Below, piece by piece: positions 13,601 through 24,073 of a stretch of DNA of 64,000 bases; the stretch's first letter is position 1, and each line of letters starts with the position of its first letter. Under the pieces are notes generated by a model. It worked only from the letters and a program-made list of their open reading frames with translations, made no database searches and was not told the DNA's origin. This stretch comes from Bugula neritina (Eukaryota > Animalia > Bryozoa), in NCBI GenBank assembly GCA_964035545.1, contig OZ037766.1:24482126-24546125 (forward strand), in the 5' to 3' direction. The translations under genes and the position numbers were made by a program.

Positions 13601-16600
13601 AGGGCCTTTAGTTTTTTATATTTAGTATTTAATACATTGTTATATCTTAGCTAAGGACTGTCATTACTGTAAGGCCAATACCTACAATAATTTAGGCTAT
13701 TTGGAGTTGCAATCCCAACATATCAGTTGCCCATCTAGCTAGTTGACATACAATATACTTGGTGTCTACATTACACTATCATGTTCTCTTTTCACCCCCA
13801 CCCAATTGATATAACTCTCAAGGACCATAGACTATTGAACAAAAAACTCTTTATCTTGATTTGGATGTTGAAAAGTGGCATGTTGAAAGCTGAAGTGACA
13901 ATAACCTTAGATTCAATAGCTGTTAGCCAATGGCTAAGTGCTATTACAGCATGTTATATTTGCTTTATTGATACTAAATACTCAATCCATGTGATAATTG
14001 ATAACAATGTATGTATGCTGGTGCACCTATATTAATATTATCTGTTGAACAAACAGAAGTTCACTTGTTTTCATTTGACTCTAGTTTTACAGTAACTAGC
14101 AATATAACTAGCAGGGTAGTCAGCAGCTGTGTTAGACTATGGTAGTCATTTCTTGTCTGTTACTATAAATACATTGCTAAACTATGCTTCAATATCTTCC
14201 TTTTTGATTATCTTTGAACATTGTTCATTTTACTTAATTTAGTTCACACTCCATATCTCTAATTTTTAGTTATTTTTTACAAGTTAACTGCAAATTTATA
14301 TATTTTTTGCCCTATGCTAATAAAATATCAACTAAAAAAGTGAAGATCGTTTTTAAATTTGCTTAATTTTCTTAGTTTTTCCCAATTGTTTAGTAAAAAA
14401 ACCTAAATTTTTATAGTGGCTTTTGATCACAGTCCGCACATATATATATATATATATTTAGCTCATATGACAATGGCGTTACGCTTTGATGCTGCAGGAC
14501 CCCTTCCCAGCCTTTTTTGCCATACATATTTAGAATCCGCAGACAAAATTACCCCATATAGTAGGTTTTCATAATTTTTAAGCAAGCTTTGAATGTTGTT
14601 CCTAATTTGCTGGTGTATATATTAGATGAAGTAAAATGACCCACATTTTATAGGGGCCTTTCAGACTTCAGTTTTATTTCTCATCATTTACAGATCGTAA
14701 TGCTGATGGTTGCCCGGGTGACGACATGTCTAAACATGCCAAACATAGTAACAACTCAAACTCTACACTTGCAGCCATTAACAGCAGGTAAGACTAGGGA
14801 GTTGAATGGTTACCTGCAGTGTATTTTAAGTATAGACTGTAGGGTATATGTCTGTTCACTGCTAGATTGTGATTATTTAAAAACGCAATAATTGCAATGG
14901 AACGAACTTTTCCTTACAAAAATTGTCAAAAATCATACTAGTTCGAAAATCAAAATCAACTCTCGAAATTTCATCACTGATTTATGGGAATAAAGTTGCG
15001 TTTATACCTCTGCTGAAAAAAGTACCGAGTTTAAGTTAATAATGCCCCTTTATAGTCAAACTTAAAATCGTTGAAATCATATTGATGCGAAAGCTCACTT
15101 TCTAAAATTGAAATTTGACTCGCCTAATCGCTATTTACTCCTTTTGAGTATTATTCTAAGATCGGCCAATTGAGTTGTCACAGTACAAAAATTTTTACAA
15201 GTGGCTTTTACAATGCAATGCAACTCGGAGAAATTTCAACCTGGCCAAATTGAATTTCTGACAGAAAATTGTGAAGGCATAAAGGCAACTTTAAACTGGT
15301 CCGAAATTCAGCAAGCATAAAGTTGTTTGCTATGGAAGCTGTGTGAGTGCTATTCCATTAATATCTCACCATAAATCACTGGTAACCACAGTCCTTAGGG
15401 TGGGTATACGAGAATTTCAACAATATTTTGACAGCGCAAGCATTTTTCTTTCTTTATTGGTTTTGCTATGAGGAAATAGTGGAAGTTTGATCCTATGATC
15501 GTGATAAATGAATGTCTACTTCATTTTAGCTCCACAGTTGTTACTTGAAGGTAACTTAGAGTAGTATAAGTTGGTTACAGCCGTGCTGGCCTATAATACA
15601 GCCTATTAATAATACTCTAATATGTTGGTAGGTGTAAAGACTCTGGTATTTCTACCGCCCCTTCTGGTCTCCTGAAGTCCCATGCTCAAGTGATTGCTCC
15701 CATCACGCAAATAGATACTACACCGAGGACACATGCCCCCGAGAATCTAGAGGACCTATACCTTCTTAACGTCACCCTTGACCCACACCGAGCTTTCCCG
15801 CTACGAACCTATGGTTGTGATGCCACTGATGATGTCACCGAGAAGTTTCCAGATCAAGCAGACACTGACTCTCAGAGTTTAACGCCACAAGTGGTAACTG
15901 CTACTCCAGACTCTGTTATCTCTCCCAGAAGACAGGTTAACTACACAACACATGGACTGAGTCGCTCTGCCTCGCCTAGCAAACCTCATTCTGATCCCGC
16001 AGTGCCCGATGTTTCCTTACATAACAAAGAGACTTCCGTCGTTTCACAAGATAGATTTAGTGTTGAGGAAGGAAGTGAGAAGCATGTTGCCGAACTTACA
16101 GGTGTTACTGCCACTGCTCAACAAGGAGGCAGCTGCACTTCTGTGGCAAAAAATGAATCCAGCCTGAAAGTGGCCGTCCCAGTCCAACCTAGCAGTACTA
16201 AATTCCTTCCTGATGTTGAAGAACTGCAACGCAGGGCCAGTCCAACTCTTCCTGCGAATGTTGAGAAGTTTGAGAAACTCAGGCTAAAGGATGGCTCTTC
16301 ACCACAGCCCTTGGGTTCAGAAGACACTGGCTGCCTCCCCAAACACCTGCGTCAGCACTCGGCACCTGAGGGCAGACCCTGTCAAGTATTTGCTCAGGCA
16401 GCTGCTGCCAATCTACCTGAATATGACTCATGCACCTCCCAGTACACCTGTTCCGACTTTAAAGGTTTCCACCCATTGGGTGGTCCTGGTGATAGAAATT
16501 CTGAATCCCTTCAACACGGTGCTCAGTATAGCTCTTTGGGCTTAGGTTCTGTGCTCGGTGGTTCTCCTAGTGTGCCCGGGTCTCCGCACCACCGCATGGC

Positions 16601-18879
16601 CCCCGCTGACTCTCTACACCACCGTATGGCTCCAGCAGATACTGTGCACCACCACATGGGTCCAGCAGATACTGTGCACCACCACATGGCTCCAGCAGAC
16701 ACTGTGCACCACCACATGGCTCCAGCAGACACTGTGCACCACCGTATGGCTCCAGCAAATACCTTGCAGCATTCCCTCTCTTTTGACCAAAATTATGCCG
16801 GCCTATTAGGACCAAACGACCAACACCGTAATTCCTTTGCTCCTGGTGCATTTGCCTATGAAAATGGTGCTGAATCTGTCTATCCACAGTTTTATGAGAG
16901 AATTGGTAATCAGGGACATAGAAACCCAATGCCTACTCCAGAACAGCCAGGTTATAGACCCGCCCCTCCCCTTTACCATTCACAAGGGGCATATAACTAT
17001 AGGGCTTTTTTTGCTCCTAATGCAACCTACGCAAACCAGAGGGATTTTCCTCAACCTTTACATCGTCAGTATAGTCTACCATTACCTCAGCAGAGAATGC
17101 AGGTGAGCCAATCACAACACATGTAACTTGCATTTAACCAATGACCAGCAACCTGTGGTGGTAAGAGCCAATAACAGGCCATACAAGGTTCTGTAATATG
17201 ATAATGTCTTGCTGCAAAACCATATGTTTTGAGAATTACATGAAAAACCACTTTCTCATGACTAAGTTATATAATAGTGAATATATATGGAAAATACTTT
17301 GCAGTGTATACCAAAGGCAAATGTAATAATGCTGAGATGTGTAGTTCGTCAAGCTTCACGTTAGGCAGTGGTTGAGGGGCAAGTTTAGTCATCACATTTA
17401 TTTCTTTAGTTATCTAGGATCTTGTAAGTACTATAATGTTATTGTGTAGATGCCGTCATCTTCCGGTACGAAGATAACAGCTGGTAAAGTTGGCAACTTT
17501 GTGCAATCCAAAGAAGTTAAAGTTTATGGAAAGCCTGAAGATCTGCCAGCCTTGATATCTCAGGCTTCGCTGGTACCAGATGGTATGACTTTCTTTATTA
17601 CTCACACTATCAACCTATGTGGTCAGTCAGGGTGCTAAGTTCATTGGTATTTTTAAATAAGGGTTTTGTGTTTTTATTTTATAATAGTAGCTGATGAATT
17701 CCATAAAGTCCTAGGAGATATACGTGGCTTTCTTCTAGTACCTCCCTTACATGAATTTCTGTCTCCAATCTTCTAAGATATTTAGGAAGAAAGTTGCACA
17801 ACTTGAACCTAAACTTTTGATCTTTCATGCACTTTCTTAGTGTGCATGGAAAGAAATTCGTCATGAAATACTGCTTTTTATTAAAAATTGTTCATCCCAT
17901 GTGCATAAACTAGCAATTTAACGTAGCTTCAATATAAACTTCATGCACTCCACCATTGTCTATTAATATTCCATTAATTTACTAATAGAAAGCATTTTAT
18001 GACAGGCTTTTTAGTTAGAAAAATTCTGAGAACTTAATCAATTGAGACAAGAATTTGAAATTTTTAGGTGACATTGTTCAGATAAAAGTACCTCATTGCA
18101 CTTCTTGTTTGAAATTTTTGGGACTAATGTTTTACCAATGATCTATCATGTGTCGAAAGTTTTAATAGACTCTTTTCCAATGTCCTTGATGTTTAATTTA
18201 TAATTGGGAGTTGTGCTCCCTTAGCATGTGCATACCTTATTCAAGTTTCTATTAACCAGAGTTGTAGCAATCAGCACATTGAATGATTGACAAGATTTTT
18301 GTTCTTCTCAATAAGTAAATAAAGATAAAAATGTTTTCGCGTTATAATTTTTCGAAGTTTACTATGAAAAATACTATTAATTTTTTTAAATATCAATGTG
18401 TGCTACTCTCAAAATATTGATTTTCCGAATGTATGAGTATATAGCATAGTTTGAGTTCTATGTAGCAGCAAATTAAAATTTTTAATGACATCCCCATATA
18501 ATAAATTGAAAGTATGTACCTTCTAAGAAGGTACAACTCCTAATTATAAATTAAGTAATGGGGACATCGTTAAAAGCTCCATTGCTTCAGAGTTTAGACT
18601 GTGCATATATTTGCATCTTAAGGTTACCGTATGTGCACCCATTATAAAATAGTTGGGTTGTGGGTTATTATTTGAGAACCTTAGTCTTGTTCCAATGTCC
18701 AGTGGTGTTGAAGTTGAAAAGATGTGTATATGCATATAAAATCTAGAAAAGTTCATTAACTGCTGAAGTTTTATCCACATTCATTGTTGATGTTTTGTTT
18801 TGTAGCAAATTTTGAAATCACTGCTGAAACAGTTGGAGACTGCCAGAGTAGTACCCGCACTATTGTCGAAGCCAACTGA
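1672..18879 (+). CDS. Uncharacterised type-I transmembrane receptor-like protein (~1219 aa, 13 exons): signal peptide, TNFR(BCMA/TACI)-like Cys module, Sushi/CCP-like domain, TM, long disordered cytoplasmic tail
   Basis: Exons with GT-AG ends and matching phases: 1672-1808, 2347-2510, 3164-3359, 3867-3946, 7205(or 7202)-7387, 7595-7692, 8545-8716, 10550-11287, 13346-13465, 14694-14787, 15632-17102, 17450-17582, 18806-18879 (3660 nt, open to TGA). Signal MWMKMTAPLMSFVTISLLLLVRISSA; CSSYWMYYEEILQSCALCS; CCP-like C..LGESCEVRCKDGY..IQC..W...P..LC; TM VWILVCVSVVIAVLLGSGIGVISFI followed by RYRRYSRRK. AATAAA at 19025. Confidence 0.75.
3353..3686 (+). repeat. 20-bp minisatellite (ATGATCAGTAAGTACACTGT), ~16 units, starting at the exon-3 donor of the receptor gene
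   Basis: Direct reading; the first unit overlaps the exon end ATGATCA|GTAAGT. Confidence 0.9.
5460..5907. mobile_element. Non-autonomous DNA element (Kolobok-like termini), long copy
   Basis: Ends TAAGTTGCGTTTA ... TAAAGGCAACTTTA form an imperfect TIR in a TTAA-like context; extensive identity with 14991-15294. Confidence 0.65.
6193..6359. mobile_element. Palindromic (fold-back) MITE-like element
   Basis: GGGTGACTGAGTGCAGTAGTTGGGGGGTCT..AGTTTGGAGTT pairs with AACTCTAAACT..AGACCCCCAAACTACTGCACTCAGTCACCC; outer arms GAAAGTTTCCATAA / TTATAGAAAATTTC. Confidence 0.6.
8740..8935 (+). repeat. (AGT/AGC/GGT)n triplet microsatellite
   Basis: Direct reading; intronic, ~25 bp after donor 8717. Confidence 0.9.
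9305..9647. mobile_element. 343-bp MITE with ~70-bp TIRs (PIF/Harbinger-like), copy 1
   Basis: TIR GCCTAGGGCCACAC..CGTATTTTCGCATGCGAAAATTGAAATCACAAGTAGCAAAGGTGTCCACTGT and its reverse complement; TTA on both flanks; near-identical inverted copy at 45487-45829. Confidence 0.85.
14991..15294. mobile_element. Same Kolobok-like element, internally deleted copy
   Basis: TAAAGTTGCGTTTATACCTCTGCTG ... AAAGGCAACTTTAA; lacks the ~150 bp that copy 1 has between ATCGCTATTT and ACTCCTTTTG. Confidence 0.65.
16587..16766 (+). repeat. Coding 30-bp tandem repeat x6 (HH[RH]M[AG]PA[DN][ST][VL])
   Basis: CACCAC(CGT/CAC)ATGGCTCCAGCAGA(T/C)ACTGTG units, in frame within the large exon. Confidence 0.9.
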
Positions 18880-19400: not shown

Positions 19401-20345
19401 ACTGTTAGCTGTTACTTAAATAGCCATTTATTATTAGAATATTTGTTATCACTCACTCTACTGTTAATGTCTAGCAGTATTCTAGAAATTAGATTCTATT
19501 TTTGCAATTGTATTATATGTTAGTAACCTACTTCTTATTGGTTCTAATCTTCTGAATTTTTTTATGACTTGTTTCAACGTTTGGTCAGTAAATGTTAGCT
19601 TTGTCAGGGATTTTTACTTTCTGATGACTGGCATGTATTTGTATTGTGTTTGCATTGATTCCTCTACATAGGGTGTTTACTAAACATACCTACCTCTGTT
19701 GGTATCTTGCTATCACACATGTATTCCTATATTTTATCTAATTTAAACATCGTGTTTGGACATTTATTACTATGCATAAATCTTCTAGTTATTTTTATAT
19801 TTTTAAATCATGGCCAGTAAGTGATTTAATTGTATTTTGTATAATATAATTATGTAATTATAGTGTAGTAAGTTTTTGTTAATTATTATTTTATTTGGTA
19901 CAATAATATTGTATTGTATATGGGGGTTGTCTCCATGTCTCACTCAGGGACTTGGAATTATCTAGCCATGTCAGTTTATTTTGTAATTACTGCATTACCT
20001 CTTAGTGTTGAATTTCTTTATGTAAATGGTTGCATTGCTGAAAATGTCAAATTTAGCTGTCTACAGTAGTAATACACCAAATTGTAAAGCAATATGTGAC
20101 CTGTTGTAGTTCATAAATTATATGTATTAATTATTCACCAAAAATAAGGCATTTCGAGTAATAAAACTGGATTATAATACTTATAATCGTTCTGAAAATG
20201 TCATTTTTCAAACATAAGAGTGGAAAGGTTTCGGGTACTTGAACATTAAACTTTGATAAATTTGAATAAAATTAAAATAAGTTCTAAAATGTAATAAGAT
20301 ATGCCTGTAAAATGATTTAATTTAAAATCTCAGTATTACTGTGAT

Positions 20346-22627
20346 TTACTGCAAGTATAAGTGCTCAACGATGGCCATCCCTTCCGTTTCATGCCGTGTT
20401 GCCCTAGCAGTTGGTAAACCTTGAAGAGGGAGCACACATTTGACGGCCTCCATGTAAATTATGGTTGCTGTAAAAAATCTTCTGGAAACAAAGTATCCCG
20501 ACTCTCCTCGACGACGATGTGTTAGTATCATGGCTTCTTTCTGGCTGTTGTGAAACAAGTAGGTGCACATGCGTATGTAACTGGCCATAGCCAGTAAATG
20601 GTGAAGAGCCTCTTTCATGGATGTAGTAATCTTACCTTGGTATTCTAGTTGTCTCAGCGCATCCCAAGATGATGTTGCTTGAATTTCGTACAACACACTA
20701 AGATCGAGGATAATTAGAGATGGCAACCGGTAGATTTTTGGCTTAACTTCAACAATCCCCGATTCACACATAAAATCAGAAATATTCAGCTCATATTTTT
20801 CAACATCTCGGACAAACATTCTCTCTGAAACAGCCCGTCTTTCAGTATTCATTGTTATAGATGCCTTGGCTGCTACAAATGTTGAAAGCAAGCTATTTGT
20901 AGCTCCGGGTGTGGTGTAAGAGTAGATGTCGCGGGTAAAACTCATCATAGCTGAATCATCTCCTTGAAGGGCTACTTCTTCATCTGGGTTGAGGTAAATG
21001 TCCGTGTATTTGGATATTAATTCTTCGATACTATAAATGTATTTGCTCTTTTTATCAGTCACCCCGTTTCCTGTCGGAATGTTGCCAGCACATTCTTGAA
21101 GGCCGTCAATCTTCACACCACTTATCTCCTGATCGTCAAACCAATCTTGAAGTTCTTTGATGTTCATGTATTTCAATTTCGTTTCTTGAAGATTTCCAAT
21201 AGCGAAGTAGGTAATCATTGCGAGGTTTCTAAAGTATTGCTTTATGTCGGGGTCCTTTCTTTCAACAATAAAGAAGTATTCTATGTCGGAGTAAGGAGTA
21301 GCTTCTCCCCGAGCAAGTGATCCTTTAGCTACGGCGCTAAATGCACATGGCGGAGTTCCCCCCATTGCAGAAACGCCGTTCTTAATGATCTTTTGGACAA
21401 ACTCAATCATACTTTGATTAGTAAACTTCACCACATATTCCATCGAATTACAAACAGAGCTTATTTTCTTCCAATTTATGCCAGCCAACCCCACACCTCG
21501 AGATTTTGCCACTGCTCTTCTCAATGGCTTCATGCTATCTCTAGTCTGCAATCTTATGTTAGACAAAAGAGATTTGAGATGTTCTGTGGCGTCTTGTGAA
21601 TTAGCAGGGAGATTTGCTCTTGTCCTATAAAGGTACTCTAGGTCATGGGCCTTGCGTGCGTAGTAACCAGCCTGGGTTTTTGATCTTACTCTACATGAGT
21701 TGTACAATGTATGCGCCTGAAAATAAAAGGTGTGCTTCTATACCTAATATTGTGGTGGTTCGTGGAACTACCAGCAGCACAACATGTAGGGTCGCGTAAT
21801 TGACCCGGAACAATGGATAGCCAATTAGCGTAGTTGATAGTTAGCAGCAATTGTAGTTTCCCGCTGCTAACTCAGTCGAAGCTAGAGTGTGAAATAGATT
21901 AGATGTGTAACTTGTTTGGAAATAATGTATCGTGTTTTTATAATGTATAGTTGTGTATAAAATATACTCGTTCACTCGACTTATCCTGGTGCAGTTCTAT
22001 AGTAGATAAATAGACTCTCTGGATAGCACATCAACCCTAAATCTGAAAATCTTAACAATATTTTGTATCTATTAATTATTTTAATATTTATATTAACCGC
22101 AATACAAAACTTATACATAGTAAGACAGGGTTCTCCACTACAAATAATAATAATTATTGATAATTTGATTTGGTCTCACTATAGCAGTAAATTTTCATTC
22201 AATTCTTGGTATACTTTGGTTGGTCACAGATTTTTAAACTTTTTGACTGGTTTAATGGTGTTAAGATGGGCAACTTCTAATGGTGTAATAGCTTTTGCAT
22301 AAATTATGCACATAGCTTCATACTAATCATTTACAAAAATTTATTAAACAAGAATCTATCAAAAACATTTGTTCACAAATAATTACAACCTGATATTACT
22401 AAACAAATCAAAGTTTTAATTTTATGTTGAAGCAACTCTACCTTCAAAAGCTGTGTCCAATTGTTCAGAGGATCTTTGTGAGCAATCTCTGCATACAAAT
22501 CTGCCAGTTTAGATAAAATTTTTACTTCTGCTTGCTTTCTTGCAGCTGCTGTTCTAAATTTGTCTTTTTCAGTTGTTACCAAGTATTCTTGTTTGAGTCT
22601 GTTTATTTCTCCTCGAACGCCTGTCAT
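20346..22627 (-). CDS. DUF294 (GlnD/PII-uridylyltransferase N-terminal-like) nucleotidyltransferase with DUF294_C-like helical domain, ~518 aa
   Basis: Exon 22627-22442 (MTGVRGE...NWTQLLK, donor GTAGAG) splices in phase 0 to ttttcAG|21716-20346 (AHTLYNSCRVR...). Motif PPCAFSAVAKGSLARGEATPYSDIEYFFIV fits the Pol-beta NTase hG[SG]xxRxE...SDxE signature. C-terminal EVKPKIYRLP..LSVLYEIQATSSWDALRQLEYQGKIT..L..A..IR resembles DUF294_C. An in-frame TAA lies just upstream of ATG 22627. Confidence 0.8.
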
Positions 22628-24073
22628 TGTAGCAACTTTCTTCTTTTACTGCTATATAGGCCAAGTGAGTTGAAATAAATATCTACAACTTCCAAATGAA
22701 AACTTTTGTGACTTTATTCTAGAGAATGCAAACACTAAATGAGATGAGAATTGTTCTTTTGGGTAAAAGATTGAATAGATTATGCAGTTTACCTTTATAA
22801 AAGCTGGAAATTGGAAATCCAAGATGTTTGGGAATTTCCATTTTCCATTTCAACATAATGATCTTTGTTTTCTACTGGTTCTGATAACAGAGGGGAAAAC
22901 TGATTCAATTGAGAACTGGTTTTCCCCTTTCACAGCAATAGCAGTGCAGTTGCTACTATTGCTATTGCTTCTGCTACTACTACTGTTGCTACTACTACTA
23001 CTATTGCTACTACTTTCCCAAAAATTACTTATACAAGATACCACAGCCTTGTTTCTTGTCAGTTTTTCTTATTATGTTCTTATATACACTCATTTCTGAC
23101 TTAGAGGTTTTATAACTTAGCTTATCACTTTTGTCATTCATTGGTCAATTATTCTATAGCCTTATCTTCCTCACTGACATTGCATCAACTGCCATTATCT
23201 CTATTTTCATTGCTGATCTTCACAATAGCTGAATATTCTGGACAGTCAAAGTCATAAATCTATGAAGAAATGAAGCAATATTAGATATACCAGAGCTGCA
23301 TATAAGATAATAATGCACATAAAATATGTGAGGATTGTATTATTACCAGAAGCATGAAATAAGAATGCAACTTTTTGCCCATTACATAATAGCATAACTC
23401 ATAAATAGTCAACAGCGAAACCTGACAATAATCCAACTAATAAAGCCTATTTGAATCTTGAATAAATAAAGCGGAACTCAATAGGAATTGCATAAATAAT
23501 GTTTTGTGAGTGAAGATGAGAAAGTCAAGCACACAGGTATAGCCAGCAGCATATTTATTTCATTATATTATTGTGGCTGGCAACTTTGAACTGCTATATG
23601 ACTGTTCAATCTTGTGCTCAATTGATATCTTCAGCTATTTAGTCCCACTGCCCATCAGTGTTCACATTAGATAATTCTTAAACTGACAGCCCTGAAGAAG
23701 TAACGTAAAATGCATAAAGTAACATAAATTACTTTTTTGACAATTAAATTTTCATATCAAGAGTGAACGAGTCATAAAATCAGAACTTTATTAAAAATGA
23801 AATATGAAGGGATATGAATAAAATATACACAAAATTTAGAGCATATTTTCATTTTTACAAAAGGTGTTGAAATATTTACATAATTATATGTACAAATAAG
23901 ACAAATAAAACCCTTGTAATAACAACTGTATGGAGCGTGATGAACTTAGTCGAGGGCAAGTGGCAGCATAATAAACTTCTGAAAATGCTATTAACAAAAA
24001 ACTATCAATCAGTCTACAATCACCATTAAAGCTATGACACAATGGAAAAATAATCTACCATAATACTACATTT

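Follow-up and report, generated by a model that had tools for sequence, protein, structure and literature searches.

Gene structure and transcription

On the minus strand of the window (the whole stretch of 64,000 nucleotides of bryozoan DNA that was analysed) lies a two-exon gene, the coding parts of which join to give a protein of 518 residues (Table 1). The list of open reading frames gives the second exon as 20346..21707, which makes 453 amino acids when counted from its first start-like codon; upstream of this codon, no stop interrupts the frame as far as the acceptor cag/GCG at 21717/21716. As exon 1 comprises 186 nt, from the ATG to AAG/gt at 22442/22441, the intron is in phase 0. Exon 1 codes for a helical N-terminal segment which matched no family in the Pfam scan and which, together with the junction, recurs in P0001 of B. 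neritina and P0005 of Watersipora. Exon 2 contains further N-terminal helices, the nucleotidyltransferase (NTase) core and a helical C-terminal domain.

The locus is a genuine bryozoan gene that is both transcribed and spliced. In runs X3 and X6, RNA-Seq-labelled contigs join 21715 to 22441 and omit exactly the 725 nt of the intron, and the shorter arm flanking the joint measures 117-213 nt; the junction reads CT..AC on the plus strand and thus GT..AG on the gene strand. These contigs extend 5' to 22653, and the RNA contigs of relatives continue beyond the stop codon into the 3' UTR. The transcript evidence consists of contigs from a close relative (~93% identical) rather than raw reads of the sequenced individual, and the RNA label of X3 and X6 is that given by the submitter. 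The NCBI B. neritina model P0001 uses the identical 22442/21716 junction, the acceptor position before 'AH' recurs in the paralogs and in contig L066, and Watersipora P0005 and P0003/P0004 stop at the same residue as the window protein. An earlier interpretation made from the DNA letters (the sequence-only reading) had described a spliced animal gene with a clean phase-0 GT-AG intron and had proposed a search for the 22442/21716 junction in RNA. The sequence, the X3 and X6 joints and P0001 all confirm this description.

Table 1 Features of the NTase gene and its intron in the window
Feature	Position	Strand	Basis
Exon 1, coding part, 62 codons	22442..22627	-	ATG 22627-22625; gt donor 22441-22440
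Intron, phase-0 GT-AG, 725 nt	21717..22441	-	Sequence; RNA-Seq-labelled X3 and X6 contigs
High-copy element in intron, ~310-320 bp, read as solo LTR	21747..22069	.	Genome copies; DNA depth; contig joint
Exon 2, coding part, 456 codons and stop (20346-20348)	20346..21716	-	ORF list; Pfam; AlphaFold model
Cryptic in-frame GT..AG stretch, 459 nt, coding here	21031..21489	-	P0001/P0002 compared with RNA contigs
NTase motif G132-X11-D144-X-E146, GSLARGEATPYSDIE	21279..21323	-	Residues 132-146 of exon-2 translation
E178 codon (in NLQET), candidate third metal ligand	21183..21185	-	Conservation and loop position
KIDG, residues 202-205	21102..21113	-	D204 as acidic candidate
AGNIPTGNG loop, residues 210-218, signature of bryozoan-type clade	21063..21089	-	Alignment
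Helical C-terminal domain, HEPN/KNTase_C-like, DUF294_C-like, residues ~289-434	20415..20852	-	Structure comparison

The public B. neritina gene models at this locus lack the catalytic core owing to the removal of 459 nt: P0001 and P0002 splice out this stretch and read ..SRGVG/IDELISKY... This internal 'intron' was rejected as the main form. No joint at 21489/21031 was found in the RNA-Seq-labelled contigs, which run unbroken from 20784 to 21715 through the catalytic core, and B. neritina DNA across the stretch has an open frame with the motif intact.

Contamination, which the sequence-only reading had already discounted, is excluded because the locus is situated on a 33.6 Mb contig and ~15 kb around it are collinear with two B. 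neritina contigs; the spliceosomal intron and the paralogs on many contigs also rule it out. The Pfam scan of eight large neighbouring ORFs gave nothing useful and the Rfam scan of 19500-23500 gave no match. The intron harbours a high-copy element, read as an insertion of a solo LTR. At least 742 candidate copies are present in the genome, many in same-strand pairs ~7.2 kb apart, and the scored copies are 97-100% identical. The element reached a depth of 64,000-143,000 in DNA run X8, which derives from the same species and one contig of which joins 21738 to 22070, i.e. without the element. It is also missing from the orthologous B. neritina loci, as a gap in the alignment to L064/L065.

Domain organization and fold

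The exons were searched and folded separately, and the AlphaFold model covers exon 2 (pLDDT 86.3, pTM 0.90). Pfam DUF294 (PF03445) was matched at residues 92-167 with 26.3 bits (gathering threshold 21) and SidM_N with 28.1 (gathering threshold 27). Foldseek ranked DrrA (E 1.6e-7) and GlnE (E 7.5e-7) with a probability of 1.00, and VIA-align gave Z 23.9 over 311 residues for DrrA and Z 20.4 and 19.8 for the N- and C-domains of GlnE, in alignments of 305-312 residues; the top entry outside DrrA and GlnE reached Z 7.9, and two partial DrrA entries 10.9 and 10.6. Since the model matches DrrA and both GlnE domains, the fold is modelled as an NTase of the DrrA/GlnE/DUF294 type followed by a helical domain, and the predicted product combines N-terminal helices, a Pol-beta NTase core of this type with G-X11-D-X-E and a HEPN-like helical domain. 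The profile and structure searches suggested by the sequence-only reading thus recovered the NTase fold.

The helical part of DrrA 3l0i (Z 10.9) matched the C-terminal domain, as did HEPN/NTase substrate-binding domains at Z 6-8. The DUF294_C-like helical C-terminus that had been proposed is therefore supported by structure as a helical domain but not by sequence, since the window protein gave no Pfam match to DUF294_C (PF10335) at E up to 1; the chlamydial relatives do match PF10335. No TPR family was found in the Pfam scan of the protein. The HD and ACT domains of GlnD were not found either (Pfam, E up to 1) and the protein ends after the helical domain, which rules out membership in GlnD. 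GlnD, previously named as the nearest kin, gives way to DrrA and GlnE, the best structural matches.

Active site

The residues G132, D144 and E146 (21323-21279) conform to the GS-ATase/DrrA-type motif, defined as G-X11-[DE]-X-[DE] (PMC8097203). In the PDB sequence match and the profile alignment, GSLARGEATPYSDIE aligns with the GSLAKAQATEYSDLD motif of DrrA. Across three clades (bryozoan, amphioxus and chlamydial), conservation of the motif residues G, S, D and E amounts to 95-100%; the whole family has Glu, not Asp, as second acid, which the published degenerate motif permits. The intact active site previously recognized at about this position is hence corroborated, with exact coordinates and with conservation in three clades.

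Two residues are candidates for the third metal ligand, both of them near-invariant; the profile alignments to PDB sequences end at residue 158-177. E178, 99-100% conserved in all three clades, lies in the AlphaFold model in the loop after helix 156-174. In DrrA the third acidic Mg2+ ligand is D150, located in the α4-α5 loop, and in GS-ATase it is D753 (PMC7815794). By analogy with the loop position of D150, we infer that E178 is a candidate third ligand. D204 belongs to the KIDG motif, to which the sequence-only reading had pointed as a downstream acidic candidate, and proved to be 100% conserved in all three clades. The AGNIPTGNG loop, modelled with low confidence (pLDDT ~52-72), is invariant in the bryozoan-type clade (A1). 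The amphioxus and chlamydial relatives have another conserved loop instead, with only P214 and G216 in common. The residues K325, R330 and R382 of the helical C-terminal domain are conserved in all clades.

The bryozoan family and its TPR-less member

The paralogue count proposed earlier put the number of paralogous matches in the same genome at 64 or more, spread over nine contigs (C1-C9); the closest is only 39% identical to the window gene. Most of the matches are fused to long TPR arrays: the paralog ORFs of 955-2110 aa combine DUF294 with TPR_12/TPR_10 arrays, and a typical bryozoan member consists of a ~440-residue module followed by 10-25 TPR repeats. One intron position is common to the bryozoan family and is also found in other species. 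The window gene has the intron before 'AH', falls into the AGNIPTG-loop clade and has no C-terminal TPR array; it is the one short member without repeats in a family with at least 60 copies in this genome.

In a tree computed by a quick search without an outgroup, with redundancy filtered by hmmalign identities, the window gene groups with Watersipora P0005 and two further sequences, P0003 and P0004, in a clade (100% SH-aLRT) that is nested within the TPR-bearing radiation. Because of this nesting, the TPR array was apparently lost in the window gene and its Watersipora orthologue. The dN/dS ratio against B. neritina L064 was 0.25 overall, with values of 0.30 for the core and 0.16 for the C-terminal domain; judged from the sequences, both genes appear to have been kept under purifying selection after the loss of TPRs. 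The view of the gene as an isolated domesticated import did not hold: it is one TPR-less derivative among numerous matches with a shared intron position, and the family is expanded in amphioxus and octocoral as well.

Distribution and origin

Related proteins in other animals amounted to 618 matches, mostly from Branchiostoma, in which the NTase-TPR relatives are hugely expanded, and additionally from the octocoral Dendronephthya. The only prokaryotic relatives found in the motif scan are expanded, effector-like chlamydial proteins sharing the PYSDLE signature. They were detected at 27 loci in Chlamydiae, two chlamydial MAGs contained 33 and 28 DUF294 matches, and architectures such as PARP-Ank-DUF294-DUF294_C-TPR occur. 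The TPR-tailed relatives that the sequence-only reading had mentioned from marine invertebrates and intracellular bacteria are thus real. For the animal DUF294/DrrA-like family, the only publications that the literature search turned up were the one on chlamydial NEX2 and general articles on HEPN and AMPylation, and no paper describing the amphioxus/octocoral NTase-TPR proteins was found.

In the tree, the bryozoan, amphioxus and chlamydial members form three separate clades, without direction, and the window gene falls among the bryozoan sequences, well away from the chlamydial clade. The occurrence of the family in amphioxus, an octocoral and environmental Chlamydiae points to an old transfer of an NTase-TPR protein between animals and intracellular bacteria, in either direction. 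Transfer from host to bacterium is as possible as the reverse, because the chlamydial members carry eukaryote-like domains and the tree has no direction. An old inter-domain transfer followed by lineage-specific expansions is likely. Of the horizontal acquisition claimed previously, an old exchange between animals and Chlamydiae remains plausible and a lone recent bacterial import does not.

Predicted function and alternatives

The gene probably encodes a free-standing, single-copy DrrA/GlnE/DUF294-type NTase of bryozoans, with two exons, which derives from the TPR-bearing family by loss of the repeats and transfers a nucleotide to protein. By analogy, the product is most likely an active protein nucleotidylyl (AMP) transferase, and the protein nucleotidylation suggested at the outset stands as the best functional prediction. 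D144 and E146 would bind Mg2+ together with a further carboxylate, E178 or D204, and a hydroxyl group on a target protein would receive a nucleoside monophosphate, probably AMP taken from ATP. DrrA AMPylates Rab1 at Tyr77, and GlnE adenylylates glutamine synthetase. Without the TPR part, the enzyme may act on a fixed partner or constitutively, not via repeat-mediated recognition.

Both a writer and an eraser are conceivable, since the AMP-removing N-domain of GlnE matches the window model as well as the transferring C-domain does (Z 20.4 vs 19.8). The protein could then remove nucleotidyl groups by phosphorolysis like the GlnE N-domain, or bind and modulate the TPR-bearing paralogs, which would suit a genome with one conserved copy that lacks TPRs and dozens that have them. 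However, the catalytic residues are identical in the writer-like paralogs and the window protein, the sequence does not separate the activities, and we consider an eraser or regulator rather unlikely.

A GlnD-like bacterial enzyme, acquired horizontally as a single gene and domesticated in an animal, is improbable. The Pfam and Atlas fold neighbours are overwhelmingly bacterial DUF294 families, Chlamydiae are the only prokaryotes with PYSDLE relatives, and the distribution is patchy among the animals named in the searches, all of which would agree with such an import. The paralogs on nine contigs, the intron position common to the family and other species, the nesting within the bryozoan clade, the synteny with B. 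neritina and the missing HD and ACT domains nevertheless contradict it, and the chlamydial PARP, Ank and F-box domains are eukaryote-like, so that the direction may be from animal or protist to bacterium.

Similarly low is the probability that the protein synthesizes a nucleotide second messenger or short oligonucleotide in the manner of cGAS, CD-NTases, OAS or HalB. Such enzymes have the Pol-beta catalytic core in common with it, and an expanded, sensor-fused family looks immune-like. Nevertheless, the fold is not nearer to CD-NTases than to protein-modifying NTases: HalB (Z 5.6) and CdnE (Z 4.4) matched weakly, whereas DrrA and GlnE, whose matches span both domains, scored four to five times higher, and PADLOC gave only marginal matches (PDC-S09/PDC-M70A). 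A small-molecule NTase of the aminoglycoside ANT type, modifying a metabolite or xenobiotic, is very improbable: ANT(4') and ANT(3'')(9) structures were listed (Z 5.8-6.6), but with low scores and rmsd above 6 Å, and the additional N-terminal helices and the loop signature are common to DrrA/GlnE-type and amphioxus proteins.

If the predicted AMP transferase activity applies, animals might have, in addition to Fic and SelO, a third class of protein AMPylases. In bryozoans and amphioxus this class, of the DrrA/GlnE type, would be expanded in the form of sensor-enzymes coupled to TPRs, with the TPR-less single-copy member as core writer (or eraser) of a nucleotidylylation signalling or immune system shared or mimicked by intracellular Chlamydiae. 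We put this forward tentatively, as a view that is more doubtful than the assignment of the gene itself. The GS-ATase/DrrA class has been treated as bacterial, and here it is a gene family of animals which contains introns, is transcribed and is under selective constraint. The window gene ties together three unexplained expansions (bryozoan, amphioxus and chlamydial NEX2-like), a link which bears on the exchange of signalling enzymes between hosts and intracellular bacteria. Being short, repeat-free, single-copy and conserved in two bryozoan genera, it is the easiest biochemical entry point.

Comparison with known systems

DrrA/SidM of Legionella pneumophila (PDB 6yx5, 3nku; SidM_N PF20879) ranks first among the structural matches and also among the PDB sequences matched across the G-X11-D-X-[DE] motif, and it shares with the window protein the two-part build of NTase core and helical domain. 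The two proteins are only 14% identical, the second acid of the window protein is Glu, its AGNIPTGNG loop has no DrrA counterpart in the alignment, and the GEF and P4M domains of DrrA are absent from it. Moreover, DrrA is a secreted bacterial effector, whereas the window gene is an intron-bearing animal gene. Both halves of E. coli GlnE (PDB 1v4a, 3k7d) match over more than 300 residues with the same metal-binding motif, but GlnE, which acts together with PII and glutamine synthetase, consists of two modules and a regulatory linker, whereas the window protein is a single module. Animals are not known to have a PII system.

The Atlas models of bacterial DUF294 + DUF294_C proteins (PF03445/PF10335) superpose with TM 0.62 over residues 41-435. 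They bear CBS, cNMP-binding or Cache sensors, whereas the window protein has no sensor domain and has ~40 additional N-terminal residues and exon 1.

The chlamydial NEX2 proteins are expanded families combining F-box, OTU, PARP or Ank domains with DUF294 and TPR (Domman et al. 2014, PMC4209131). With the window protein they have in common the PYSDLE signature, E178, D204, K325, R330 and R382; like the bryozoan paralogs, they have the NTase followed by TPR_12/TPR_10 arrays and a massive within-genome expansion. They differ from the window protein in forming a separate clade with 20-26% identity, in lacking the AGNIPTG loop and in their TPRs and added N-terminal effector-like domains. The amphioxus and octocoral NTase-TPR proteins (UniRef automatic name 'Protein-PII uridylyltransferase N-terminal domain-containing') superpose over a 435-residue module with TM 0.86 (Atlas, amphioxus cluster) and have the same motif and C-terminal basic residues, but they constitute a separate clade (96% SH-aLRT) with another loop after the FDG motif and are nearly always fused to TPRs.

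Gene structure, expression and genomic context

The window gene is composed of two coding exons, and since exon 1 consists of whole codons only and ends with AAG/gt, its intron is in phase 0. The reading frame, the intron, the GSLARGEATPYSDIE motif and the KIDG element were all found where the sequence-only reading had placed them.

Features of the window gene (residue numbers refer to the exon-2 translation)
Feature	Position	Strand	Remarks
Exon 1, coding part	ATG 22627-22625 to AAG/gt 22442/22441	-	62 codons
Intron	between 22442 and 21716	-	725 nt, GT-AG, phase 0
Intron element	~21747-22069		~310 bp, high-copy
Exon 2, coding part	acceptor cag/GCG 21717/21716 to stop 20346-20348	-	456 codons
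GSLARGEATPYSDIE motif	21323-21279	-	exon-2 residues 132-146
KIDG	21113-21102	-	residues 202-205

The 22442/21716 junction was seen both in the B. neritina proteins P0001 and P0002 and in contigs from X3 and X6, two runs labelled metagenomic RNA-Seq ("symbiont metagenome", 2016) which, being ~93% identical to the window, represent a close relative. These contigs join 21715 to 22441 and omit 725 nt (CT..AC on the plus strand, i.e. GT..AG for the gene), with a shorter flank of 117-213 nt. Their depth over the intron is nearly zero (none past 21791 in X3, traces at depth 1-6 up to 22073 in X6). The DNA run X8 from the same species (~99% identical) covered the entire stretch. The RNA contigs are unbroken from 20784 to 21715, and the catalytic core is therefore present in the mRNA. 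The orthologue of the window gene is thus transcribed in a close relative. A comparison with the B. neritina contig L064 gave dS 0.18, dN 0.045 and dN/dS 0.25 (core 0.30, C-terminal domain 0.16), a ratio that indicates purifying selection and hence selective constraint on the gene.

The locus lies on a 33.6 Mb contig, and ~15 kb including both flanks are collinear with both B. neritina contigs (L064 and L065, GCA_010799875.2) at 79-92% identity, which bears out the earlier statement that the gene is not contamination. The sole large difference is a ~310-320-bp insertion in the intron. This element has at least 742 candidate copies genome-wide, those scored being 97-100% identical, and many of them form same-strand pairs ~7.2 kb apart, as expected for the LTR pairs of a young retroelement; it is probably such an LTR. 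The copy in the window is solitary. It is missing from both B. neritina loci and from one X8 DNA contig, in which 21738 is joined to 22070, and the insertion is therefore recent and apparently polymorphic. On the plus strand, an ORF at 15690-17126 encodes 478 residues, among which Pro, Ser and His are abundant and HH(R/H)MAPAD(T/S) is repeated in tandem. No Pfam family was found for it; in B. neritina, a gene of 478 residues is called at the syntenic position (L065 10394-13305).

Fold and active site

The two exons were searched one by one, and exon 2 alone was folded. The Pfam scan produced SidM_N (28.1 bits, gathering threshold 27), DUF294 (26.3 bits, gathering threshold 21, residues 92-167) and a weak NTP_transf_2 match. 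The closest PDB sequence match was DrrA, spanning the motif. The AlphaFold model, made with the 28-sequence alignment A1 (pLDDT 86.3, pTM 0.90), was matched by Foldseek to DrrA (E 1.6e-7) and GlnE (7.5e-7 and 2.2e-5). Similarly, exhaustive VIA-align comparison gave DrrA 6yx5_B (Z 23.9, 311 residues, rmsd 4.0) and the N- and C-domains of GlnE (Z 20.4 and 19.8). Apart from these, only partial DrrA structures exceeded Z 8 (10.9 and 10.6), and CD-NTase-like structures scored Z 4-6. In the ESM Atlas, the top model was an amphioxus NTase-TPR cluster (TM 0.86, 435 residues), followed by bacterial proteins that combine DUF294 and DUF294_C with sensors of the CBS, cNMP or Cache type (TM 0.62). All these matches thus indicate that the modelled protein is an NTase of the DrrA/GlnE/DUF294 type with a helical domain. 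The DUF294 part of the original GlnD/DUF294 assignment holds, whereas GlnD was ruled out, as the Pfam scan found no HD or ACT match and DrrA and GlnE were the top structural matches. Likewise, the C-terminus described as DUF294_C-like has the helical domain (residues 289-434 match HEPN/NTase substrate-binding domains at Z 6-8) but no DUF294_C match in Pfam. Another, small Atlas cluster superposes on residues 1-289 (TM 0.77 by hit); its DUF294 proteins are 292 residues long and mostly of ciliate origin, a further eukaryotic lineage with this NTase type.

The metal ligands are D110, D112 and D150 in DrrA and D701, D703 and D753 in GS-ATase (PMC7815794). G132, D144 and E146 of the window protein match the NTase motif. 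Among 125 bryozoan-type, 121 amphioxus-type and 40 chlamydial domains, G132, S133, P141, S143, D144, E146, E178, G200, D204, P214, G216, K325, R330 and R382 are 92-100% conserved in all three groups. The active site is conserved and appears intact, as proposed. The third metal ligand may be either E178, located in the loop that follows helix 156-174 and in this comparable to DrrA D150, which also sits in a loop, or D204, the acidic candidate previously suggested within KIDG. The AGNIPTGNG loop, modelled with low confidence, is invariant only in the bryozoan-type clade.

B. neritina models lacking the catalytic core

P0001 and P0002 (91-92% identity to the window protein) skip from ..SRGVG straight to IDELISKY.. 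The counterpart of this skip in the window is a cryptic in-frame GT (21489-21488) .. AG (21032-21031) pair spanning 459 nt. The L064 and L065 DNA is collinear with exon 2 (91.3-91.6% identity), and it keeps an open frame across the skipped stretch, in which the 15-residue motif, unchanged, and the AGNIPTG loop both occur. The X3 and X6 RNA contigs do not contain the 459-nt joint over 20784-21715. The 459-nt "intron" was rejected as the main form on these grounds, and we read the core deletion as an annotation error or, at most, a minor isoform. The models concerned, EB796_016334 and EB796_021999 (L064 6001-7969 and L065 6001-7305), remove 153 codons with the catalytic core. The two loci (dS 0.046) could be haplotigs or the products of a recent duplication; in L065, exon 2 does not align over its first ~20 residues.

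Paralogs and probable loss of the TPR array

When the 216 Mb genome to which the window belongs was searched in six frames, at least 64 matches were found, the window locus being the sole 100% match and the next 39% identical. Many of the matches form tandem clusters on three contigs (C2, C5 and C6), where the open frames span 950-2,267 residues. The 12 paralog loci analysed are single ORFs of 955-2,110 residues, and the NTase-module profile matched every one of them over 440-447 positions. All six paralogs scanned with Pfam carry TPR_12, TPR_10 and TPR_1 arrays; DUF294 exceeded the gathering threshold in four, and the other two gave weak SidM_N or no NTase match. All 12 ORFs begin at the "AH/SH" with which exon 2 of the window gene also opens, and a pyrimidine tract and CAG stand before it; L066, a contig from another sample, has ttccag/GCCCAT at the same point. 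The intron position is therefore common to the family.

In a tree of 79 domains (IQ-TREE quick maximum-likelihood search, SH-aLRT, midpoint-drawn, no outgroup), the window protein, its Watersipora subatra orthologue P0005 (513 aa), P0003 and P0004 form one group (100% SH-aLRT). None of the four has TPRs, and the group sits inside the TPR-bearing bryozoan-type clade (53 rows, 100%). The simplest reading of this topology is that the TPR array was lost before the window, Watersipora and P0003/P0004 lineages diverged. The present analysis adds this TPR-less, single-copy member, kept as an orthologue between bryozoans, and corrects the B. neritina models.

Predicted function

By analogy with DrrA and GlnE, the window protein is a predicted protein nucleotidylyltransferase, which would carry out Mg2+-dependent transfer of a nucleoside monophosphate onto a protein hydroxyl, as DrrA does on Rab1 Tyr77. 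Both halves of GlnE, the deadenylylating and the adenylylating one, match about equally well (Z 20.4 and 19.8), and the protein may instead be an eraser of nucleotidyl groups, which we consider the less probable reading. Having no TPRs, the predicted transferase may be constitutively active or dedicated to one fixed partner; the TPR repeats of the paralogs presumably recruit or sense something. No paper on this enzyme class in animals was found in the literature searched; according to a 2021 review, the only known metazoan AMPylases are Fic enzymes and SelO.

Distribution and origin

Word searches named Watersipora, Branchiostoma lanceolatum, B. floridae, B. belcheri and Dendronephthya gigantea. 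An amphioxus-type query matched 618 proteins, and the 120 matches listed are nearly all from Branchiostoma, named automatically [quoted passage not shown] or mislabelled TTC28, KLC4 or OGT. One B. lanceolatum protein (P0122, Hypp3365) has two tandem NTase modules and a Peptidase_M28 part, which could point to the fusion of gene models or to an architecture that is unusual. The contig of P0016, one of many bryozoan-type matches, carries a hAT transposase fragment and has low gene density.

When 185,579 prokaryotic species genomes were scanned with two signature peptides, 27 loci were confirmed (20-26% identity). The informative record titles among them are all chlamydial (Chlamydiales, Parachlamydiaceae); L025 and L050 belong to one MAG labelled just "uncultured bacterium". 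TPR-tailed relatives in marine invertebrates and intracellular bacteria, mentioned in the sequence-only reading, exist in Branchiostoma, Dendronephthya gigantea and Chlamydiae. The tree separates bryozoan-type, amphioxus/octocoral (96%) and chlamydial domains (100%, one long branch excepted). Since animals and Chlamydiae have the module in common and fall into three separate groups, an old exchange of the NTase-TPR module between them, in either direction, is likely. Horizontal acquisition is plausible, though not that of a lone gene, given the at least 64 family matches and the nested position in the bryozoan-type clade. Host-to-bacterium transfer deserves serious consideration, as the chlamydial proteins carry eukaryote-like domains.

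Two chlamydial MAGs, G001 and G002 (2.6 and 4 Mb, via L032 and L028), have 33 and 28 DUF294 matches, in ORFs of 600-1,955 residues with PARP, ankyrin, DUF294, DUF294_C and TPR arrays. The 50 members of the Neochlamydia NEX2 family have an F-box, sometimes OTU, and then DUF294 and TPRs (PMC4209131). The MAG proteins match this published family, and the sets in G001 and G002 represent NEX2-type expansions within uncultured Chlamydiae.
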